Positions 3,058 to 64,000 of a stretch of 64,000 nt of DNA are shown piece after piece. Position 1 is the stretch's first letter. Every line of letters begins with the position of its first letter. Both the position numbers and the translations under genes were made by a program. The notes beneath the pieces are model-generated. The model ran no database searches and was not told the DNA's origin. It saw only the letters and a program-made list of their open reading frames with translations. The stretch is taken from the IMG/VR virus record IMGVR_UViG_3300042515_001753, positions 169,887 through 233,886 of that record; one strand, written 5' to 3'.

Positions 3058-3115
3058 ATTATAGCAGGAAAGGGGTCCCTTGAGAACCCCCTGTGCCAGT
3101 TTTTAATCTGGACAC
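3058..3115 (-). promoter_or_regulatory. Early promoter element (copy 3)
   Basis: 3057-3102 matches 2437-2482 at 45 of 46 nt; followed by CTGGACAC at 3108-3115. Confidence 0.75.
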
Positions 3116-3594
3116 CCAGCACCATATTTTATGGCAACTGAAAAACGGTGTCTATCATAAAAAGATGTTGCTTTATGAAGTAAACTTGCATTAAAAGCAA
3201 CTAGACGATTTGGAATAGGCAGAATTCCATAAAGTCTTTCATCAATAAAAAATTGAGTTTCTCCACCATCATCCAAATCCCAAGTTTCATTTGGATAATA
3301 TAAAAATGTAACTTCTTCACTACTTCCATCAGTATGAAAATAAGGATTTTCTGATGGAGCAAAACAATTTATGTACATCCTGTACAATTTGAGATTTGTA
3401 ACAAACTCTTTAGTTTTAGTTTTAAATAAATTATAAATTGGTTCGGTTTCTGAAATGTTATGAACCATTCCAGTAGGCGGATGATTTTCATCATCTGCTT
3501 CACCATAGGTATACACAGAAGATTTACAATATTCCAAAACAAAATCAAATTGTTCTTGTGATAGAAAATTATCGGTCACTTCAATCATATACAC
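3103..3594 (-). CDS. 2OG-Fe(II) oxygenase (prolyl-4-hydroxylase-like)
   Basis: FHTD ... DGGET ... PNRLVAF ... LHKA ... RFS: HxD...H...R signature. Confidence 0.85.
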   Translation of the reverse strand: MYMIEVTDNFLSQEQFDFVLEYCKSSVYTYGEADDENHPPTGMVHNISETEPIYNLFKTKTKEFVTNLKLYRMYINCFAPSENPYFHTDGSSEEVTFLYYPNETWDLDDGGETQFFIDERLYGILPIPNRLVAFNASLLHKATSFYDRHRFSVAIKYGAGCPD

Positions 3595-4175
3595 TCCTCA
3601 TAATGAATACCGTACTTTATGGCAATTGAAAAGCGATGCCGATTACGAAAAGGTGTTGCCGTATGTTCTAAATTAGCATCAAATGAAATTAAACGATTTG
3701 GAATGGGTGGAATTCCATAAAATCCCCCATCAATAAAAAACTTGGTTTCTCCACCATCATCTAAGTCCCAAGTTTCATTTGGATAATATAGAAATGTAGT
3801 TCCAACCTCTCCATCAGTATGAAAATAAGACTTTTCTAATGCGGCAAAACAATTGATGTAAATTCTTGTAATATCTTTTGTTTTATACTGTGTAAATTGA
3901 GTTTCTATTGAACTTGAAAATAGATCAAACAATTTTTTTTGATTAACAATTTTTGAAGGGTCTCCTCCAATTAAATGTGATTCATCTGATAATGGATTAT
4001 CCTCAGTGTGATGATAAACTTCGTGAACTAATCCAGTACAGTATTTAAAATTAGTTGGAGAATTAGAATCTGAACCGCCACCTTCTCCATAAAAATAAGA
4101 TGCTTTGATACAATAGTCAAGAATAAAAAGATGTTCTTCTTCAGTAAAAAAATTATCATAAACATCAATACTCAT
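3585..4175 (-). CDS. 2OG-Fe(II) oxygenase, tandem paralog of the previous gene
   Basis: FHTD...EHTA...RFS; shares FLYYPNETWDLDDGGET with 3103-3594. Confidence 0.85.
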   Translation of the reverse strand: MSIDVYDNFFTEEEHLFILDYCIKASYFYGEGGGSDSNSPTNFKYCTGLVHEVYHHTEDNPLSDESHLIGGDPSKIVNQKKLFDLFSSSIETQFTQYKTKDITRIYINCFAALEKSYFHTDGEVGTTFLYYPNETWDLDDGGETKFFIDGGFYGIPPIPNRLISFDANLEHTATPFRNRHRFSIAIKYGIHYEECI

Positions 4176-15522: not shown

Positions 15523-15529
15523 TATTTAT
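15523..15529 (-). promoter_or_regulatory. Late promoter core ATAAATA
   Basis: TATTTAT on the plus strand ~28 nt upstream of the 1853-aa fibre start. Confidence 0.55.
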
Positions 15530-15834
15530 GAAGATAAGTCCTGCCGCAAAAACTCATAACCTTCATCTGGAAGGTCTTGGGGGTTTTCTAGGTCCATATC
15601 AAAAAGTAATGGGTGTGCTTCCTCGTCTATAAGATAGAATGAGTTTTTAAATAAATCATCTGGTTCAAATGCACGATACTTATCTGCCGTTCTACAGAGG
15701 TCTTCATCGTATAAGTGCCCATCAGGTAATTCATCGAAGGTAAATGGAATCTCGTTGATGAAGTACATTTTCACAATCATACTTCCGTTATTATACCAAC
15801 AATATGACTGACTTATTTTATACTTGAAAGACAT
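15526..15834 (-). CDS. Hypothetical acidic protein
   Basis: 102-aa ORF preceded by ATAAATA (plus strand TATTTAT 15855-15861). Confidence 0.7.
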   Translation of the reverse strand: MSFKYKISQSYCWYNNGSMIVKMYFINEIPFTFDELPDGHLYDEDLCRTADKYRAFEPDDLFKNSFYLIDEEAHPLLFDMDLENPQDLPDEGYEFLRQDLSS

Positions 15835-15857: not shown

Positions 15858-16571
15858 TTATTTTAACCATTTACGAATAGAATTATCACTAACTCCATAT
15901 TTTTTACCTACAGCAAGATAAGAACTTTCTTTTACTTCTTGTAATAATTGTTCTTTAGAAGGTCTTTCAACTTTTCTTTGGGATTTTGAATAGCAACTAT
16001 TACAAAGACCAGTTTTGCAGTTTGTTTTCAATTCAACCCCACAAGAAGAACATTTATGAATTTTTTTGGTTAGTATTGTTTGGATTTTATTTTTTATTGT
16101 TTGTGAGTTTTTATTTTTCTTATTTTTACCACGATATGTTGGAGTTTTAGCGTGACAATTTGGGCATAAGATTTTTAAATTTTCTAATATATTGTTATAA
16201 TGGTCTCCATCAATATGATCTAATTCTAAAGGTATTGGTTCTTCTAACCATTCACTCAATCCGCAGCATTCACATCTATGATTCTTTAATCCCTCTATAA
16301 TTAATCTTTTTCGCAATTTGTTAGAATTGTACTCATAATTCTTAACAAGGATTTCACTTAATGGTGTTGTATTAAACTTATGAGTTTTTCCCTTTAGATG
16401 TCCTTGACCTGTAAAATGTGAAGTGTCTATTCCATAAAGTTTTTCAAATTTTTTAAATACTCTATAGTTTCCACCTCTTGGAGATAATCCAAGTTTTGTA
16501 AGTGCTTGTGCTATGGAATAACTTTCTTCTACTGCTTTTTTAAATTCTTCTATGCTATATGAATGTCTCAT
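15858..16571 (-). CDS. Free-standing HNH homing endonuclease with zinc-finger and C-terminal HTH-like segments
   Basis: CECC...LELDHIDGDHYNNILENLKILCPNCH (HNH core); second CxxC...CxxC; C-terminal YLAVGKKYGVSDNSIRKW helix-turn-helix-like segment. Confidence 0.9.
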   Translation of the reverse strand: MRHSYSIEEFKKAVEESYSIAQALTKLGLSPRGGNYRVFKKFEKLYGIDTSHFTGQGHLKGKTHKFNTTPLSEILVKNYEYNSNKLRKRLIIEGLKNHRCECCGLSEWLEEPIPLELDHIDGDHYNNILENLKILCPNCHAKTPTYRGKNKKNKNSQTIKNKIQTILTKKIHKCSSCGVELKTNCKTGLCNSCYSKSQRKVERPSKEQLLQEVKESSYLAVGKKYGVSDNSIRKWLK

Positions 16572-16614
16572 ACTGGTAAACTTATTGTATAGTTATTTAT
16601 ATAAGTTTACCAGT
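16572..16614 (-). promoter_or_regulatory. Perfect 14-bp hairpin enclosing late promoter TATAAATA and abutting the HNH start codon
   Basis: ACTGGTAAACTTAT (16572-16585) and ATAAGTTTACCAGT (16601-16614) are exact reverse complements; TATTTATA at 16594-16601; ATG at 16571-16569. Confidence 0.85.
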
Positions 16615-16617
16615 TCA

Positions 16618-16888
16618 TACCCGTGAGTGGATTCGAACCACCGCTTGAGAGATTTTCTTACCACTATAGTTTTCACTACCCTTTCGGTTTGTGGTCTGGA
16701 CTATACCTTCATCATACCTTTCGGTTTAGATGTTCCCCGTCTAGTCTCTACACCTTCATCTTACGATGCTTGGCTCGGTATTGCCATTTTACAGGTTTCA
16801 CCGAATTTGAGGAATTGCACTCATAAGGTTTCCCAAATGAGGCTCAATTTTCATAAGTCTCTTGCCTCTTCCGCTGGGCTACACGGGC
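16618..16888 (-). tRNA. trnL: tRNA-Leu(UAA), split by a group I intron (exon 1 16888-16855, exon 2 16656-16618)
   Basis: Joined exons GCCCGTGTAGCCCAGCGGAAGAGGCAAGAGACTT|AAAATCTCTCAAGCGGTGGTTCGAATCCACTCACGGGTA fold into a cloverleaf with stem AGAGA/TCTCT, loop CT-TAA-AA and T-loop TTCGAAT. CCA is not encoded. Confidence 0.9.
16657..16854 (-). ncRNA. Group I self-splicing intron (IC3-like, trnL type), 198 nt, no ORF
   Basis: 5' exon ends in U and intron ends in G; IGS ATTGAG; P element AAATTCGGTGAAA, Q AATACCGAGC, R GTAGAGACTAGA, S AAGGTATAGTCC; P3 TTCCTC/GGGGAA; P7 GACTA/TAGTC; GNRA-capped P2, P6a, P8 and P9 stems. Confidence 0.92.
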
Positions 16889-16902
16889 TTGTGTATGAGA
16901 CT

Positions 16903-16931
16903 ATTATAACTCAAAGAGTCCTAATAGTCAA
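16903..16931 (-). promoter_or_regulatory. Sigma70-type promoter TTGACT-17bp-TATAAT directly upstream of tRNA-Leu
   Basis: Plus strand ATTATA 16903-16908 and AGTCAA 16926-16931. Confidence 0.75.
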
Positions 16932-16932
16932 G

Positions 16933-17006
16933 TGCTCATTGTGGGAATCTAACCCACCTTCGGCGCTTTATGAGAACGCTGCATTCAAACAGATTGCTAA
17001 ATGAGC
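16933..17006 (-). tRNA. tRNA with CAU anticodon (Met, or Ile2 if lysidine-modified); non-canonical D and T loops
   Basis: GCTCATT/AATGAGC acceptor stem, GCGTT-CTCATAA-AGCGC anticodon arm, GTGGG-TTAGATT-CCCAC T arm. Confidence 0.8.
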
Positions 17007-17035
17007 ATTCGCTATTCGCAAATGACGAATAGCAA

Positions 17036-17123
17036 TACGAGTGCCTGGATTCGAACCAGGTCAAAGCCGCTAATCTGGCGGAAAGGCGTTATAAGTGCCC
17101 TCTGACTACCAAGTCTCACTCGC
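17036..17123 (-). tRNA. tRNA-Ile(UAU)-like, with long variable arm and very small D arm
   Basis: GCGAGTG/CACTCGT acceptor stem, GACT-TGGT-AGTC D hairpin, CT-TAT-AA loop, CCGC..GCGG variable stem, CCTGG-TTCGAAT-CCAGG T arm. Confidence 0.7.
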
Positions 17124-17171
17124 ATAAAAGTTGCCTTGAAGCAACATATAAGACCTATAAGTTGCCTTGAC

Positions 17172-17354
17172 TCAACAACCTTCTTCGTGGTCGGTGTGTA
17201 TTCGTATGAGGTCGTCTGCTTCTTTGTATTGTCTATAAGGAATCATCATAGCATCTCCGTGTTCGCTAGTAACAATAAAAGACTCTCCATTTTCCACTCT
17301 TTCTAGTAGATTATCAAAGTCTTCTTGAAATTCTTCTACCGTAAACTTTTCCAT
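17172..17354 (-). CDS. Phd/YefM antitoxin-like small protein
   Basis: MEKFTVEEFQEDFDNLLERVENGESFIVT..G.AMMIP resembles the Phd/YefM N-terminal pattern. Confidence 0.6.
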   Translation of the reverse strand: MEKFTVEEFQEDFDNLLERVENGESFIVTSEHGDAMMIPYRQYKEADDLIRIHTDHEEGC

Positions 17355-17357
17355 TTA

Positions 17358-17543
17358 TCAAAGAGGATTTGAGTATGCAAGACAATCATCACTTACCTGA
17401 GCACGAACCACTTCCAGTACATTCATAAACTGGTCTGGAGTTTCACAATTCACAACTCGTTCACCACCCTCACTCGAATACAGATAGAACTTACGAGCAA
17501 GCGTATCGACAACACAACGGGTCAGGGTCTCTTCGGCAGGCAT
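17358..17543 (-). CDS. Small hypothetical protein
   Basis: 61-aa ORF directly after a consensus promoter. Confidence 0.7.
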   Translation of the reverse strand: MPAEETLTRCVVDTLARKFYLYSSEGGERVVNCETPDQFMNVLEVVRAQVSDDCLAYSNPL

Positions 17544-63068: not shown

Positions 63069-63242
63069 TTAAACAATAACCCAACGAGCACCAGTATTTA
63101 TAGTGACTGTGACACCACTATTTATAGTTGTAGGACCTATTGTCATCCAATTATAGGTTGTAGTGAGAGTTTGATTGGCATCAATTGCAGTACTACAACC
63201 AACAAAAGCTCCTCCATTAGCTCCTATTACTACTGATGACAT
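63069..63242 (-). CDS. 57-aa small tail-associated protein
   Basis: Not in the track. Hand translation MSSVIGANGGAFVGCSTAIDANQTLTTTYNWMTIGPTTINSGVTVTINTGARWVIV*. Confidence 0.65.
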   Translation of the reverse strand: MSSVVIGANGGAFVGCSTAIDANQTLTTTYNWMTIGPTTINSGVTVTINTGARWVIV

Positions 63243-63248
63243 AATTCA

Positions 63249-64000
63249 TTAAGTTGATTTGTTTCTATTTATAATGCTGTATAAATTTTGAATTTGAACT
63301 TGTTGTTCTTTAATTGCTTCTATGAGTAATCCAACAAGATTTCCATAAGCAACTGATTTGTATCCATTACTTTCTATAACGAGGTCTGGATATACTGTTT
63401 CCAACTCTTGTGCAATCAAACCTATGGTGTGAACGTTAGTATCAATACGATCATATTCTACACCTCTAAGATTAATAACTTTTTCAAGTGCATTTTCAAT
63501 TGTATGAATATTAGTTTTTAGTCTTTCATCAGAGTTTGCAGTTATTGATCCACCAACTGTTAAGTCACCAGTGCTTGCATTAAATGTAAATGCCGTTGCT
63601 GTAGTTCTTACACTTGCGGTTTGGTTTGATCCTGCAGCAGCAACAAATACTGGATAAAATGTCGCATTTGTTGTTGTGTCTGTAGCATTAATAGTTGTTG
63701 ATGGTCCTGCCGATCCTTGAAGACCTTGAGTTCCTTGTGAACCTACCGTACCTTGTGAACCTACTGTACCTTGTGTCCCCTGAAGACCTTGACGACCTTG
63801 AAGACCTTGAAGACCTTGAGTTCCTTGTGAACCAACTGTACCTTGTGAACCTACTGTACCTTGTGAACCTACTGTACCTTGTGAACCTACCGTACCTTGA
63901 GTCCCCTGAAGACCCTGACGACCTTGAAGACCTTGAAGACCTTGAAGACCTTGAGTTCCTTGTGAACCTACCGTACCTTGTGAACCTACTGTACCTTGTG
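63249..64000 (-). CDS. C-terminal part of a second collagen-like tail fibre with peptidase S74-like chaperone (start outside window)
   Basis: QGTVGSQG / QGLQG repeats at ~63710-64000; ANSDERLKTNI ... AYGNLVGLLIEAIKEQQ; TAA at 63251-63249. Confidence 0.85.
   Translation of the reverse strand, partial: QGTVGSQGTVGSQGTQGLQGLQGLQGRQGLQGTQGTVGSQGTVGSQGTVGSQGTVGSQGTQGLQGLQGRQGLQGTQGTVGSQGTVGSQGTQGLQGSAGPSTTINATDTTTNATFYPVFVAAAGSNQTASVRTTATAFTFNASTGDLTVGGSITANSDERLKTNIHTIENALEKVINLRGVEYDRIDTNVHTIGLIAQELETVYPDLVIESNGYKSVAYGNLVGLLIEAIKEQQVQIQNLYSIINRNKST

Follow-up and report, generated by a model that had tools for sequence, protein, structure and literature searches.

Several kinds of homing systems resemble parts of the locus that we describe here. 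In collaborative (or trans) homing, an intron that lacks an ORF is paired with a neighboring free-standing endonuclease gene, as in cyanophage S-PM2 (F-CphI with the psbA intron) and in Aeh1/T4 (mobE with the nrdB intron) (Zeng, Bonocora and Shub 2009; Bonocora and Shub 2009; reviewed in PMC3984707 and PMC2988022). These systems are from T4-like phages, and they have so far been described for protein genes. The model also predicts that the endonuclease later moves into the intron.

Other free-standing endonucleases are found in phage tRNA gene clusters, without introns. These include SegB from T4, which belongs to the GIY-YIG family, and the HNH proteins F-TflI, F-TflII, and F-TflIV (hegA) from T5. 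SegB recognizes the T-loop motif GGTTCRANTCC, which is universal in tRNAs, and cuts at the 3' ends of tRNA genes (PMC2330249). Homing by SegB replaces the neighboring tRNA genes.

Group I introns are also found in the anticodon loops of bacterial tRNAs. The intron of tRNA-Leu(UAA), inserted between U34 and A35, is the textbook ancient bacterial and plastid intron (Kuhsel et al. 1990; Paquin et al. 1997; Rudi et al. 2002, cited in PMC3984707). It has long been treated as lacking an ORF and as mostly vertically inherited, and its patchy distribution and possible lateral transfer have been debated; it is not known to have a mobility enzyme. In contrast, the intron of the tRNA-fMet of Synechocystis encodes a homing endonuclease of the PD-(D/E)XK family, I-Ssp6803I, which is specific for the anticodon region (Bonocora and Shub 2001, cited in PMC3984707).

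We examined a locus from a freshwater cyanophage that combines features of these systems: a tRNA(UAA) gene is split by an intron of the tRNA-Leu(UAA) family, and a free-standing HNH gene lies just after it. The locus is within a 64,000-nt stretch of the IMG/VR virus record IMGVR_UViG_3300042515_001753 (positions 169,887 to 233,886), which we refer to as the window. Unlike the described collaborative systems, the interrupted gene is a tRNA, the enzyme is an HNH protein from a tRNA-array family rather than an EndoVII-like protein, and the two partners are separable in relatives. Unlike the SegB and F-Tfl systems, there is an intron. Unlike the classical tRNA-Leu(UAA) intron, this copy is in a phage, in a tRNA with a short variable arm, and with an endonuclease gene alongside. 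We found no description of a phage tRNA-Leu intron with an HNH gene in the literature that we could search, although most subscription journals were outside its scope and so this is not proof of absence.

Features of the locus

An initial annotation, made from the sequence alone, proposed that a sigma-70 promoter, a tRNA-Leu(UAA) interrupted at the anticodon by a group I intron without an ORF, a hairpin with a late promoter, and an HNH endonuclease gene lie together on the minus strand. We confirmed that all five features are present at or next to the stated coordinates (Table 1). One correction is needed: the tRNA lacks the long variable arm of bacterial tRNA-Leu. It has the anticodon UAA and the discriminator A73, but its mature length is 73 nt, so its assignment as Leu rests on the anticodon alone.

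Table 1. Features of the split tRNA locus, in coordinates of the window.
Feature	Coordinates	Strand	Description
tRNA-Met(CAU)	16932..17006	-	Upstream neighbor in the conserved tRNA trio
Sigma-70-type promoter	16903..16931	-	TTGACT-17-TATAAT; predicted to drive the tRNA(UAA) precursor
tRNA(UAA), 5' exon	16855..16888	-	34 nt, ending in GAGACTT
Group I intron	16657..16854	-	198 nt, no ORF; between anticodon positions 34 and 35; last base is G
tRNA(UAA), 3' exon	16618..16656	-	39 nt, beginning with AAAATCTCT; 5-nt variable loop; discriminator A
HNH cassette	15865..16614	-	About 750 bp, inserted 3-4 nt after the 3' end of the tRNA; the empty site in relatives reads TA(T)TAAAATAAATATAAG; the last Lys codon and the stop codon of the ORF come from the flank
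Leader hairpin	16572..16614	-	3' arm ends 1 nt before the ATG; TATAAATA (the T4-type late promoter consensus) in the loop at 16594-16601
HNH gene	15858..16571	-	237 aa; N-terminal helical module, HNH core (about residues 100-142, numbered on the full ORF), Cys4 ribbon, C-terminal helix-turn-helix
Conserved 102-aa gene (phrog_4134)	15526..15834	-	Marks the downstream edge of the insertion slot; used for the survey that was blind to intron and HNH

The promoter matches 11 of 12 consensus positions, which was the best match in a 2-kb scan. It is conserved upstream of the tRNA in three relatives (L251, L229, and L235; L numbers refer to the stretches of DNA from relatives) and in S-SRM01.

ARAGORN with intron search places the tRNA at 16618-16888, and the exon junction is GAGACTT/AAAATCTCT, as the initial annotation had it. 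The boundaries of the intron are independently fixed by L235 and L238, whose uninterrupted tRNA is letter-for-letter the predicted spliced product, so exact excision would restore the gene. The 5' exon ends in CUU, and CUU/A can pair with UGAG 8-12 nt into the intron, which gives a U-G pair at the splice site (this pairing was worked out by hand). The intron ends in GGUAAG. No ORF of 40 aa or more lies on the intron's strand within the intron.

The hairpin has a free energy of -16.7 kcal/mol (z = -3.8), and structurally equivalent hairpins are found in the diverged cassettes of L016, L015, and L233. A stable hairpin that abuts the start codon, with a late promoter placed so that late transcripts would lack its 5' arm, is the design described for I-TevI/II/III, segB, and Aeh1 mobE (PMC2988022).

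The HNH protein matches phrog_10822 (HNH endonuclease) over its full length (E = 5e-56). Pfam gave no HNH hit above threshold (E = 0.019 for HNH, below its cut-off). In an alignment of 21-22 homologs, C100, C103, H119, N131, C136, N138, and C139 are invariant, and H140 is present in at least 90% of rows (these numbers are positions in the first alignment row, window:15861-16571, rather than in the 237-aa ORF). The gene is intact and under purifying selection, with a dN/dS of 0.10-0.16 against 11 homologs, all of them intact. Searches of PDB by sequence, profile, and fold gave only weak matches to the HNH core (I-HmuI, McrA, and Cap5), which say nothing about specificity. The best profile hit was the nicking intron endonuclease I-HmuI (PDB 1U3E; E = 0.038, and E = 0.31 with Foldseek), which also has an HNH core with modular DNA-binding extensions, including a C-terminal helix-turn-helix. 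There is no significant global similarity, and I-HmuI is encoded within an intron in a DNA polymerase gene. An AlphaFold model, built without one alignment row from an annotated GenBank record, is confident locally (mean pLDDT of 84.8) but not globally (pTM of 0.44), so we did not interpret the packing of the domains.

Mobility of the intron and the HNH cassette

Identical tRNA exons are found with neither intron nor HNH (L235 and L238), with the intron only (L229 and L099), and with both (the window and L251). Homology with L015, whose HNH protein is 64% identical, covers the cassette only. The nearest relative of the window is L205 (98% identical in the neighboring gene). Compared to L205, the window differs by a block that starts within 4 nt of the 5' end of the tRNA and ends at the stop codon of the HNH gene, where homology resumes, so the tRNA, the intron, and the HNH gene were swapped in together. 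This resembles the block replacement by SegB. Deletion scars of the cassette are seen in L177/L269 and L165. L177 and L269 retain 8 nt of the leader and the last two codons, which shows that some intron-only alleles descend from alleles with both elements. Thus, presence/absence polymorphism on identical exons, exact cassette boundaries, and scars all show that both elements are mobile.

We considered whether the intron and the HNH cassette travel as a single conversion block, but we rejected this as a general rule. Exon 2 is specific to each tRNA backbone, and it lies between the conserved intron and the conserved cassette, so the two parts cannot always have moved in one uninterrupted conversion tract. 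Also, L006 has a chimeric intron: it shares with the window only the last 59 nt of the intron through to the HNH stop codon, while the 5' part of its intron and its tRNA are unrelated to the window's. This implies recombination into an allele that already carried an intron. We considered whether the identity of these 59 nt reflects structural constraint alone, but we rejected this because the P9 hairpins in that stretch differ among other introns.

The same signature of intron plus 3' exon occurs in more than 120 viral stretches, often with an HNH beside or inside the intron, and in more than 120 bacterial stretches. (These and the other counts from scans of viral, genome, and metagenome sequences are samples and not censuses.) At least 87 of 120 bacterial genome hits are tRNA-Leu(UAA), and the copies from Rhizobium are about 80-84% identical to the window's intron. 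Four bacterial genome bins also have the HNH inside the intron. Every intron-bearing allele retains GACTT/AAAATC, while the other positions of the stem vary.

Association of the HNH family with tRNA(UAA)

The HNH protein belongs to a family that lives in phage tRNA arrays: 144 of 159 family ORFs lie within 200 nt of a tRNA gene, and these tRNAs have many identities (Gln, Trp, Asp, Glu, Pro, Leu, and others). HegA (F-TflIV) from T5 is a homolog, with 38.6% identity over residues 72-234. In the phylogenetic tree of the HNH proteins, a clade of 44 rows (SH-aLRT of 95) gathers most of the enzymes that are associated with tRNA-Leu(UAA), and it includes six that are encoded inside this intron. The window's HNH is linked to this intron family by descent: the nearest outgroup of its clade is an HNH protein encoded inside a tRNA-Leu(UAA) intron of a 595-kb phage (L004; 55% identical over residues 5-152). 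Intron-encoded members at the same intron site, as in L004, L088, and L025, are the end state that the collaborative homing model predicts.

All 13 distinct homologs with at least 76% identity, from IMG/VR and metagenomes, lie 15-48 nt after an intron-containing tRNA(UAA). These are on at least six tRNA backbones, both short-arm and type II. (At the syntenic position, relatives carry either the short form or a type II tRNA-Leu(UAA) of 82-88 nt.) In contrast, just 10 of 44 distinct alleles at the syntenic locus carry the intron. In a sample of loci that was selected for the intron and was blind to the HNH, 23 of 60 non-redundant loci have a family HNH inside the intron or within 400 nt of the tRNA.

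Independent distribution of intron and HNH among relatives had been named beforehand as evidence against a coupling, and this is partly what we found: intron-only alleles are common. Among the distinct alleles in the syntenic survey, 4 have both, 6 have the intron only, 4 have an HNH only (all short forms), and about 29 have neither. The association is positive but not significant (Fisher odds ratio of 4.8, p = 0.07); with phylogenetically independent pairs, p was about 0.25, but with just 9 pairs this test was underpowered. On the flank tree, the intron and the HNH each change state at least 8-10 times. The short forms (about 150 aa, 44-57% identical) sit after intron-less tRNA(UAA) genes whose sequences equal those of phages without the HNH (L254 matches L219), and one of these (L283) retains the GACTTAAAATC junction uninterrupted. 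The HNH of L015 lies between an intron-less tRNA-Leu(GAG) and an intron-less tRNA-Leu(UAG), 120 nt from an intron-less tRNA(UAA).

Possible explanations for the pairing

The initial annotation proposed collaborative homing: the HNH would cut intron-less trnL at or near the anticodon, and the intron would confer immunity. Our results support this interpretation only in part. We consider it the best explanation, but with a probability of roughly 0.45. In this view, the locus holds two selfish elements in a loose partnership, and it looks like a mobile intron caught half-assembled. The intron would remove itself from the precursor, so that the tRNA still works. The leader hairpin probably blocks translation of read-through transcripts from the tRNA promoter, and a late promoter in its loop would give an open message late in infection; this regulation is inferred from T4. 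The enzyme would belong to a subfamily specialized on tRNA-Leu(UAA) genes. During mixed infections, it would nick or cut the intron-less tRNA(UAA) gene of the other phage in or near the anticodon arm (the conserved GACTT/AAAATC). Repair from the donor would then copy the intron or, with longer conversion tracts, the whole tRNA and the HNH cassette. The donor's own copy would be spared because the intron splits the site. Later, the HNH would decay or be deleted, leaving intron-only alleles, while in other lineages the same kind of HNH would have moved into the intron, giving a self-sufficient mobile intron.

The anatomy of the locus, the mobility of both parts, the purifying selection, and the family relationships come directly from our analysis, whereas cleavage and its site, the immunity, the splicing itself, and the timing of expression are inferences. 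An intron-encoded enzyme must recognize the intron-less junction, so this specificity probably runs in the subfamily. On the other hand, the short forms and L015 beside intron-less tRNA(UAA) argue against this scenario, as do the separate movements implied by exon 2 and by L006. Also, characterized HNH intron endonucleases such as I-HmuI cut intron-containing DNA as well.

Alternatively, the two elements could be independent neighbors. This is less likely but remains a live possibility. The HNH would be an ordinary endonuclease of tRNA arrays, like SegB or F-TflI/II/IV, whose target is in the 3' half of the tRNA (the T arm or the acceptor end) or in the spacer that its own insertion disrupts. 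The intron would be irrelevant to its specificity and immunity, and the adjacency would then reflect both elements favoring the same conserved gene. The association of the whole family with diverse tRNAs, the homology to hegA, the recognition of the T-loop motif and the cutting at tRNA 3' ends by SegB, the short forms after intron-less tRNA(UAA), and the many separate changes of state are consistent with this. Also, the slot after tRNA(UAA) receives an unrelated small HNH in the intron-less phages L212-L218. However, this scenario does not explain why all 13 close homologs are next to an intron-containing allele, when only about 23% of alleles carry the intron, or why the same subfamily repeatedly ends up inside this intron.

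It is unlikely that the HNH is a parasite of the intron, which would recognize the intron's 3' end and exon 2 and home into intron-containing alleles that lack an HNH. The chimeric intron of L006 looks like conversion of this kind, and the close homologs occur only next to intron-containing alleles. But an allele with the HNH would still carry the target, so another source of immunity would be needed; the intron-encoded relatives imply recognition of the intron-less junction; and intron-only alleles with an apparently virgin flank are common and remain uninvaded (L099, L116, and L195). Finally, it is very unlikely that the HNH was co-opted for another function, such as break-induced amplification or exchange of the tRNA array (SegB is reported to promote segmental amplification of tRNA anti-defense loci; PMC13096335), or that it no longer acts on DNA at this locus: although the purifying selection is strong, sporadic presence, exact boundaries, scars, and movement between unrelated backbones are the signature of a selfish homing gene, not of a fixed host function.

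If the coupling is real, then a tRNA example with dozens of natural alleles in every intermediate state would allow a direct test of the proposed route from an ORF-less intron with a free-standing nuclease to a composite mobile intron. More speculatively, an HNH subfamily specific for the intron-less anticodon arm might drive the spread of the tRNA-Leu(UAA) intron and might appear in every stage of mobile-intron assembly: free-standing beside an intron-less gene, free-standing beside the intron, and inside the intron. We consider this doubtful, but it is not excluded. It would supply the missing mobility mechanism for this intron and would be a natural series for testing the Bonocora-Shub pathway on a tRNA gene.

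Detection of split tRNAs

Default ARAGORN and whole-contig Rfam scans miss these split tRNAs, so phage tRNA inventories are undercounted. In Rfam scans of the whole window, with either the gathering or the E-value mode, we found only tRNA-Met, because the speed filters removed the intron. When we searched just 2.2 kb, the intron matched Intron_gpI (RF00028) across the full model (1-253) with 64.4 bits, above the gathering score of 50 (E = 1.6e-15).

Structure of the locus

The window is a T4-like cyanomyovirus (IMG/VR contig 3300042515_001753; 234 kb), and its closest isolate is the freshwater Synechococcus phage S-SRM01, at about 75% nucleotide identity. Between a Phd-like ORF and the long tail-fibre gene, the minus strand carries a conserved trio of tRNAs, followed by a gene of 102 amino acids (phrog_4134).

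Coordinates of features in the window and in related loci
Feature	Sequence	Strand	Coordinates
HNH endonuclease ORF, 237 aa	window	-	15858-16571
tRNA(UAA), with intron	window	-	16618-16888
tRNA-Met(CAU)	window	-	16932-17006
Long-arm tRNA-like gene with anticodon UAU, 92 nt	window	-	about 17035-17126
Phd/YefM-like antitoxin ORF (60 aa) and adjacent DUF7294 ORF	window	-	17172-17354 and 17358-17543
Cluster of three TATAAATA motifs	window	-	63095-63273
Unrelated small HNH gene	L212-L218		about 3115-3440
Unrelated small HNH gene	L001 (S-SRM01)		3310-3729
Region with the chimeric intron	L006		2601-2953

Using ARAGORN with intron search, we found that tRNA(UAA) is a 73-nt tRNA split between positions 34 and 35 by 198 nt. 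This insert matches Rfam's group I intron model above the curated threshold (64.4 bits against 50, E=1.6e-15). Also, the exon ends in U and the intron ends in G. This score was obtained by searching 2.2 kb: Rfam cmscan on the full 64 kb missed the intron in both gathering and E-value modes, and ARAGORN with default settings misses the split tRNA, so routine annotation will overlook these genes. A near-consensus promoter (11 of 12 positions) lies 14 nt upstream.

An intact ORF begins 46 nt after the tRNA. It matches phrog_10822 ("HNH endonuclease") end to end (E=5e-56) and keeps every conserved Cys, His, and Asn of the motif. Immediately before its ATG is a 14-bp hairpin (z = -3.8) whose loop holds TATAAATA. 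This is the layout known to restrict translation of I-TevI, segB, and mobE to late transcripts in T-even phages (PMC2988022).

The initial annotation described a promoter, a tRNA-Leu(UAA) interrupted at the anticodon by a group I intron, a hairpin with a late promoter, and an HNH endonuclease, and we confirmed this observation in every particular. However, the tRNA has a variable loop of only 5 nt, so calling it tRNA-Leu rests on the anticodon alone. In closely related phages (loci L205-L283), the same slot holds either a short-variable-loop tRNA(UAA) of 73-77 nt or a type II tRNA-Leu(UAA) of 82-88 nt. Replacement of the whole tRNA therefore seems to be frequent, and the short form may not be charged like a normal tRNA-Leu.

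The first tRNA of the trio is also odd: it has a long variable arm (type II shape) but the anticodon UAU, as well as an A-C mismatch in the anticodon stem, and ARAGORN finds it only at a relaxed threshold. A long-arm tRNA reading AUA is unusual. Equivalents are conserved in S-SRM01, S-SKS1, and most of the syntenic loci, and one is annotated as tRNA-Ile in S-TIM54.

Mobility of the intron and the HNH gene

To examine the locus without regard to the intron or the HNH gene, we took the 80 IMG/VR loci that hold the closest relatives of the 102-aa neighbor. Nearly all of them have a tRNA(UAA) at this position, in either the short-arm or the type II form. We then counted distinct alleles.

Distinct alleles of the syntenic tRNA(UAA) locus, by presence of the intron and of a family HNH in the downstream slot
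Intron	Family HNH	Distinct alleles
yes	yes	4
yes	no	6
no	yes (all short forms of about 150 aa)	4
no	no	about 29

Most tellingly, the window's exons occur letter for letter in all three states: uninterrupted (relatives L235 and L238), with the intron only (relatives L229 and L099), and with both the intron and the HNH gene (the window and relative L251). This also proves the splice junction. The same three states exist for a type II allele (loci L234, L208, and L233).

Comparing empty and occupied sites shows that the HNH gene is in a cassette of about 750 bp that is inserted 3-4 nt after the tRNA. The final Lys and stop codons are borrowed from the flank. Two relatives, L177 and L269, keep only the first 8 nt of the leader, just after the tRNA 3' end, fused to the last two codons (TGAACTGG joined to TTAAAATAA), and another, L165, keeps 21 nt of leader followed by unrelated sequence. 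These are deletion scars, which shows that some intron-only alleles descend from alleles with both the intron and the HNH gene.

On a tree of the flanking gene, the intron changes state at least 10 times and the HNH gene changes state at least 8 times among 77 loci. When compared to 11 homologs, the HNH gene has dN/dS of 0.10-0.16 and no stop codons, so, judging from its sequence, it is a working protein.

The slot after tRNA(UAA) is not specific to this family. In phages L212-L218, an unrelated small HNH gene (about 110-140 aa, with its own TATAAATA) occupies the same slot after an intron-less tRNA(UAA), and in S-SRM01, it occupies the spacer between the UAU tRNA and tRNA-Met. The tRNA spacers are a hot spot for more than one endonuclease family.

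Extent of the shared blocks

We compared the window to four relatives to see how far the shared sequence extends. The nearest relative, L205, is 98% identical in the 102-aa gene, but similarity breaks within 4 nt of the tRNA 5' end and resumes at the HNH stop; L205 has an unrelated, intron-less type II tRNA-Leu(UAA) there. The whole module of tRNA, intron, and HNH was exchanged. With L016, a different phage with a type II tRNA, similarity runs only from the last 6 nt of exon 1 to the HNH stop. With L015, which has a more distant HNH, similarity covers the HNH cassette only. With L006, whose HNH is 96% identical, similarity starts 59 nt before the 3' end of the intron, and the 5' part of that intron and the tRNA are unrelated to the window's. 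The L006 intron (also found in loci L405 and L435) is a chimera of 270-278 nt, with its last 59 nt nearly identical to the window's. It appears to sit one base earlier (33/34), with a 3' exon starting TAAAATC, and ARAGORN miscalls the gene as tRNA-Leu(CAA).

Exon 2, which lies between the intron and the cassette, is specific to each tRNA backbone. The two conserved parts therefore cannot always have arrived in one uninterrupted conversion tract.

Distribution of the HNH family

Of the 159 family ORFs that we recovered, 144 lie within 200 nt of a tRNA gene, and these tRNAs have many identities. T5 hegA/F-TflIV, from the tRNA region of T5, is 38.6% identical over residues 72-234. This is a tRNA-array family.

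Within the family, a clade of 44 (SH-aLRT 95) holds most of the members that are associated with tRNA-Leu(UAA). Of these 44, 20 lie just after an intron-containing tRNA, 9 lie just after an intron-less tRNA (mostly tRNA-Leu(UAA)), and 6 are encoded inside the intron, with intron lengths of 688-993 nt. The intron-encoded enzyme of the 595-kb phage LR756511 (locus L004), which is 55% identical over residues 5-152, is the nearest outgroup of the window's clade.

With the addition of a metagenome scan, there are 13 distinct homologs with at least 76% identity. All 13 lie 15-48 nt after an intron-containing tRNA(UAA), on at least six different tRNA backbones. At 63-64% identity, one relative (L412) does the same, while the other (L015) sits between intron-less tRNA-Leu(GAG) and tRNA-Leu(UAG). 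The base rate of the intron is about 23% of alleles at the syntenic locus. If the six associations were independent, which is not established, then all of them falling on intron-containing genes would be unlikely by chance (roughly 1e-4). All intron-bearing alleles keep GACTT/AAAATC, where the slash marks the exon junction.

A different HNH, of about 200 aa and similar only over the core (residues 79-176), lies directly upstream of intron-containing type II tRNA-Leu(UAA) genes in other phages (loci L085, L086, L094, L104, L108, L120, L130, L134, L137, L143, L158, L162, L172, and L175). This is a second, independent pairing of an HNH with this intron-bearing gene.

Distribution of the intron family

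The signature of the intron plus 3' exon occurs in more than 120 stretches from IMG/VR and in more than 120 stretches from bacterial genomes; both counts are lower bounds. At least 87 of the 120 bacterial hits that we examined are tRNA-Leu(UAA) with an ORF-less intron. Copies from Rhizobium are about 80-84% identical to the window's intron. In four bacterial genome bins among these hits (L306, L311, and L326 from Bacteroidota and L332 from Chloroflexi), a tRNA-Leu(UAA) intron of 674-725 nt encodes a homolog of this HNH (42-48% identical), although these contigs might be chromosomal, prophage, or mis-binned phage. Among phage loci that were selected for the intron, 23 of 60 non-redundant loci with enough flanking sequence have a family HNH inside the intron or within 400 nt of the tRNA.

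The intron core is also 75-82% identical to sequences inside a capsid gene (Pelagibacter phage HTVC120P, MH598807), a hypothetical gene (Atu_ph07, MF403008), and a tRNA-Arg annotation (a Microcoleus phage, OR578706) of unrelated phages. This suggests that the same intron lineage occupies other host genes.

A possible partnership between the intron and the endonuclease

The best-supported reading is a loose partnership of the collaborative or trans-homing kind, to which we assign a probability of about 0.45. In this view, an HNH of a tRNA-Leu(UAA)-specific subfamily would break the intron-less gene of a co-infecting phage. Repair would copy the intron and, with longer tracts, the whole tRNA and the cassette, and the intron would protect the carrier. 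The proposal in the initial annotation, that this HNH cuts intron-less trnL at or near the anticodon and that the intron confers immunity, is only partly supported. Our evidence is comparative: the anatomy of the locus, the mobility of both elements, the purifying selection on the HNH, and the family relationships follow from it, while splicing activity, cleavage and its site, immunity, and the late timing of expression are inferred.

There are real counter-indications. Short-form relatives sit next to intron-less tRNA(UAA) genes that are identical to those of HNH-less phages, and one of these keeps the junction motif intact. In the survey that was blind to both elements, the statistical association between the intron and the HNH is weak. 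Also, the L006 chimera implies entry into an allele that already carried an intron.

The main rival is that the enzyme behaves like SegB, which recognizes the T-loop motif and cuts at tRNA 3' ends (PMC2330249), with the intron being incidental; we consider this somewhat less likely than the partnership. A variant in which the enzyme targets the intron is unlikely, and co-option of the HNH is more unlikely still.

The ingredients are all known: collaborative homing (psbA/F-CphI and nrdB/mobE), endonucleases in tRNA clusters (SegB and F-Tfl), a tRNA-intron endonuclease (I-Ssp6803I), and the tRNA-Leu(UAA) intron itself. In full-text searches of a literature library that lacks most subscription journals, we did not find a description of a phage tRNA group I intron with an HNH, whether free-standing or intron-encoded. 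The main value of this locus is the natural series of intermediate states and the possible link to the lateral spread of the tRNA-Leu intron.

Other features of the window

Near the tRNAs, the Phd/YefM-like antitoxin ORF (phrog_375; Pfam E=1.6e-5, which is below the cut-off) sits next to a DUF7294 ORF, with no obvious toxin partner. The pair is conserved in S-SKS1 and S-SRM01. Finally, three of the window's four exact TATAAATA motifs cluster within 180 nt, which may be a set of late promoters.
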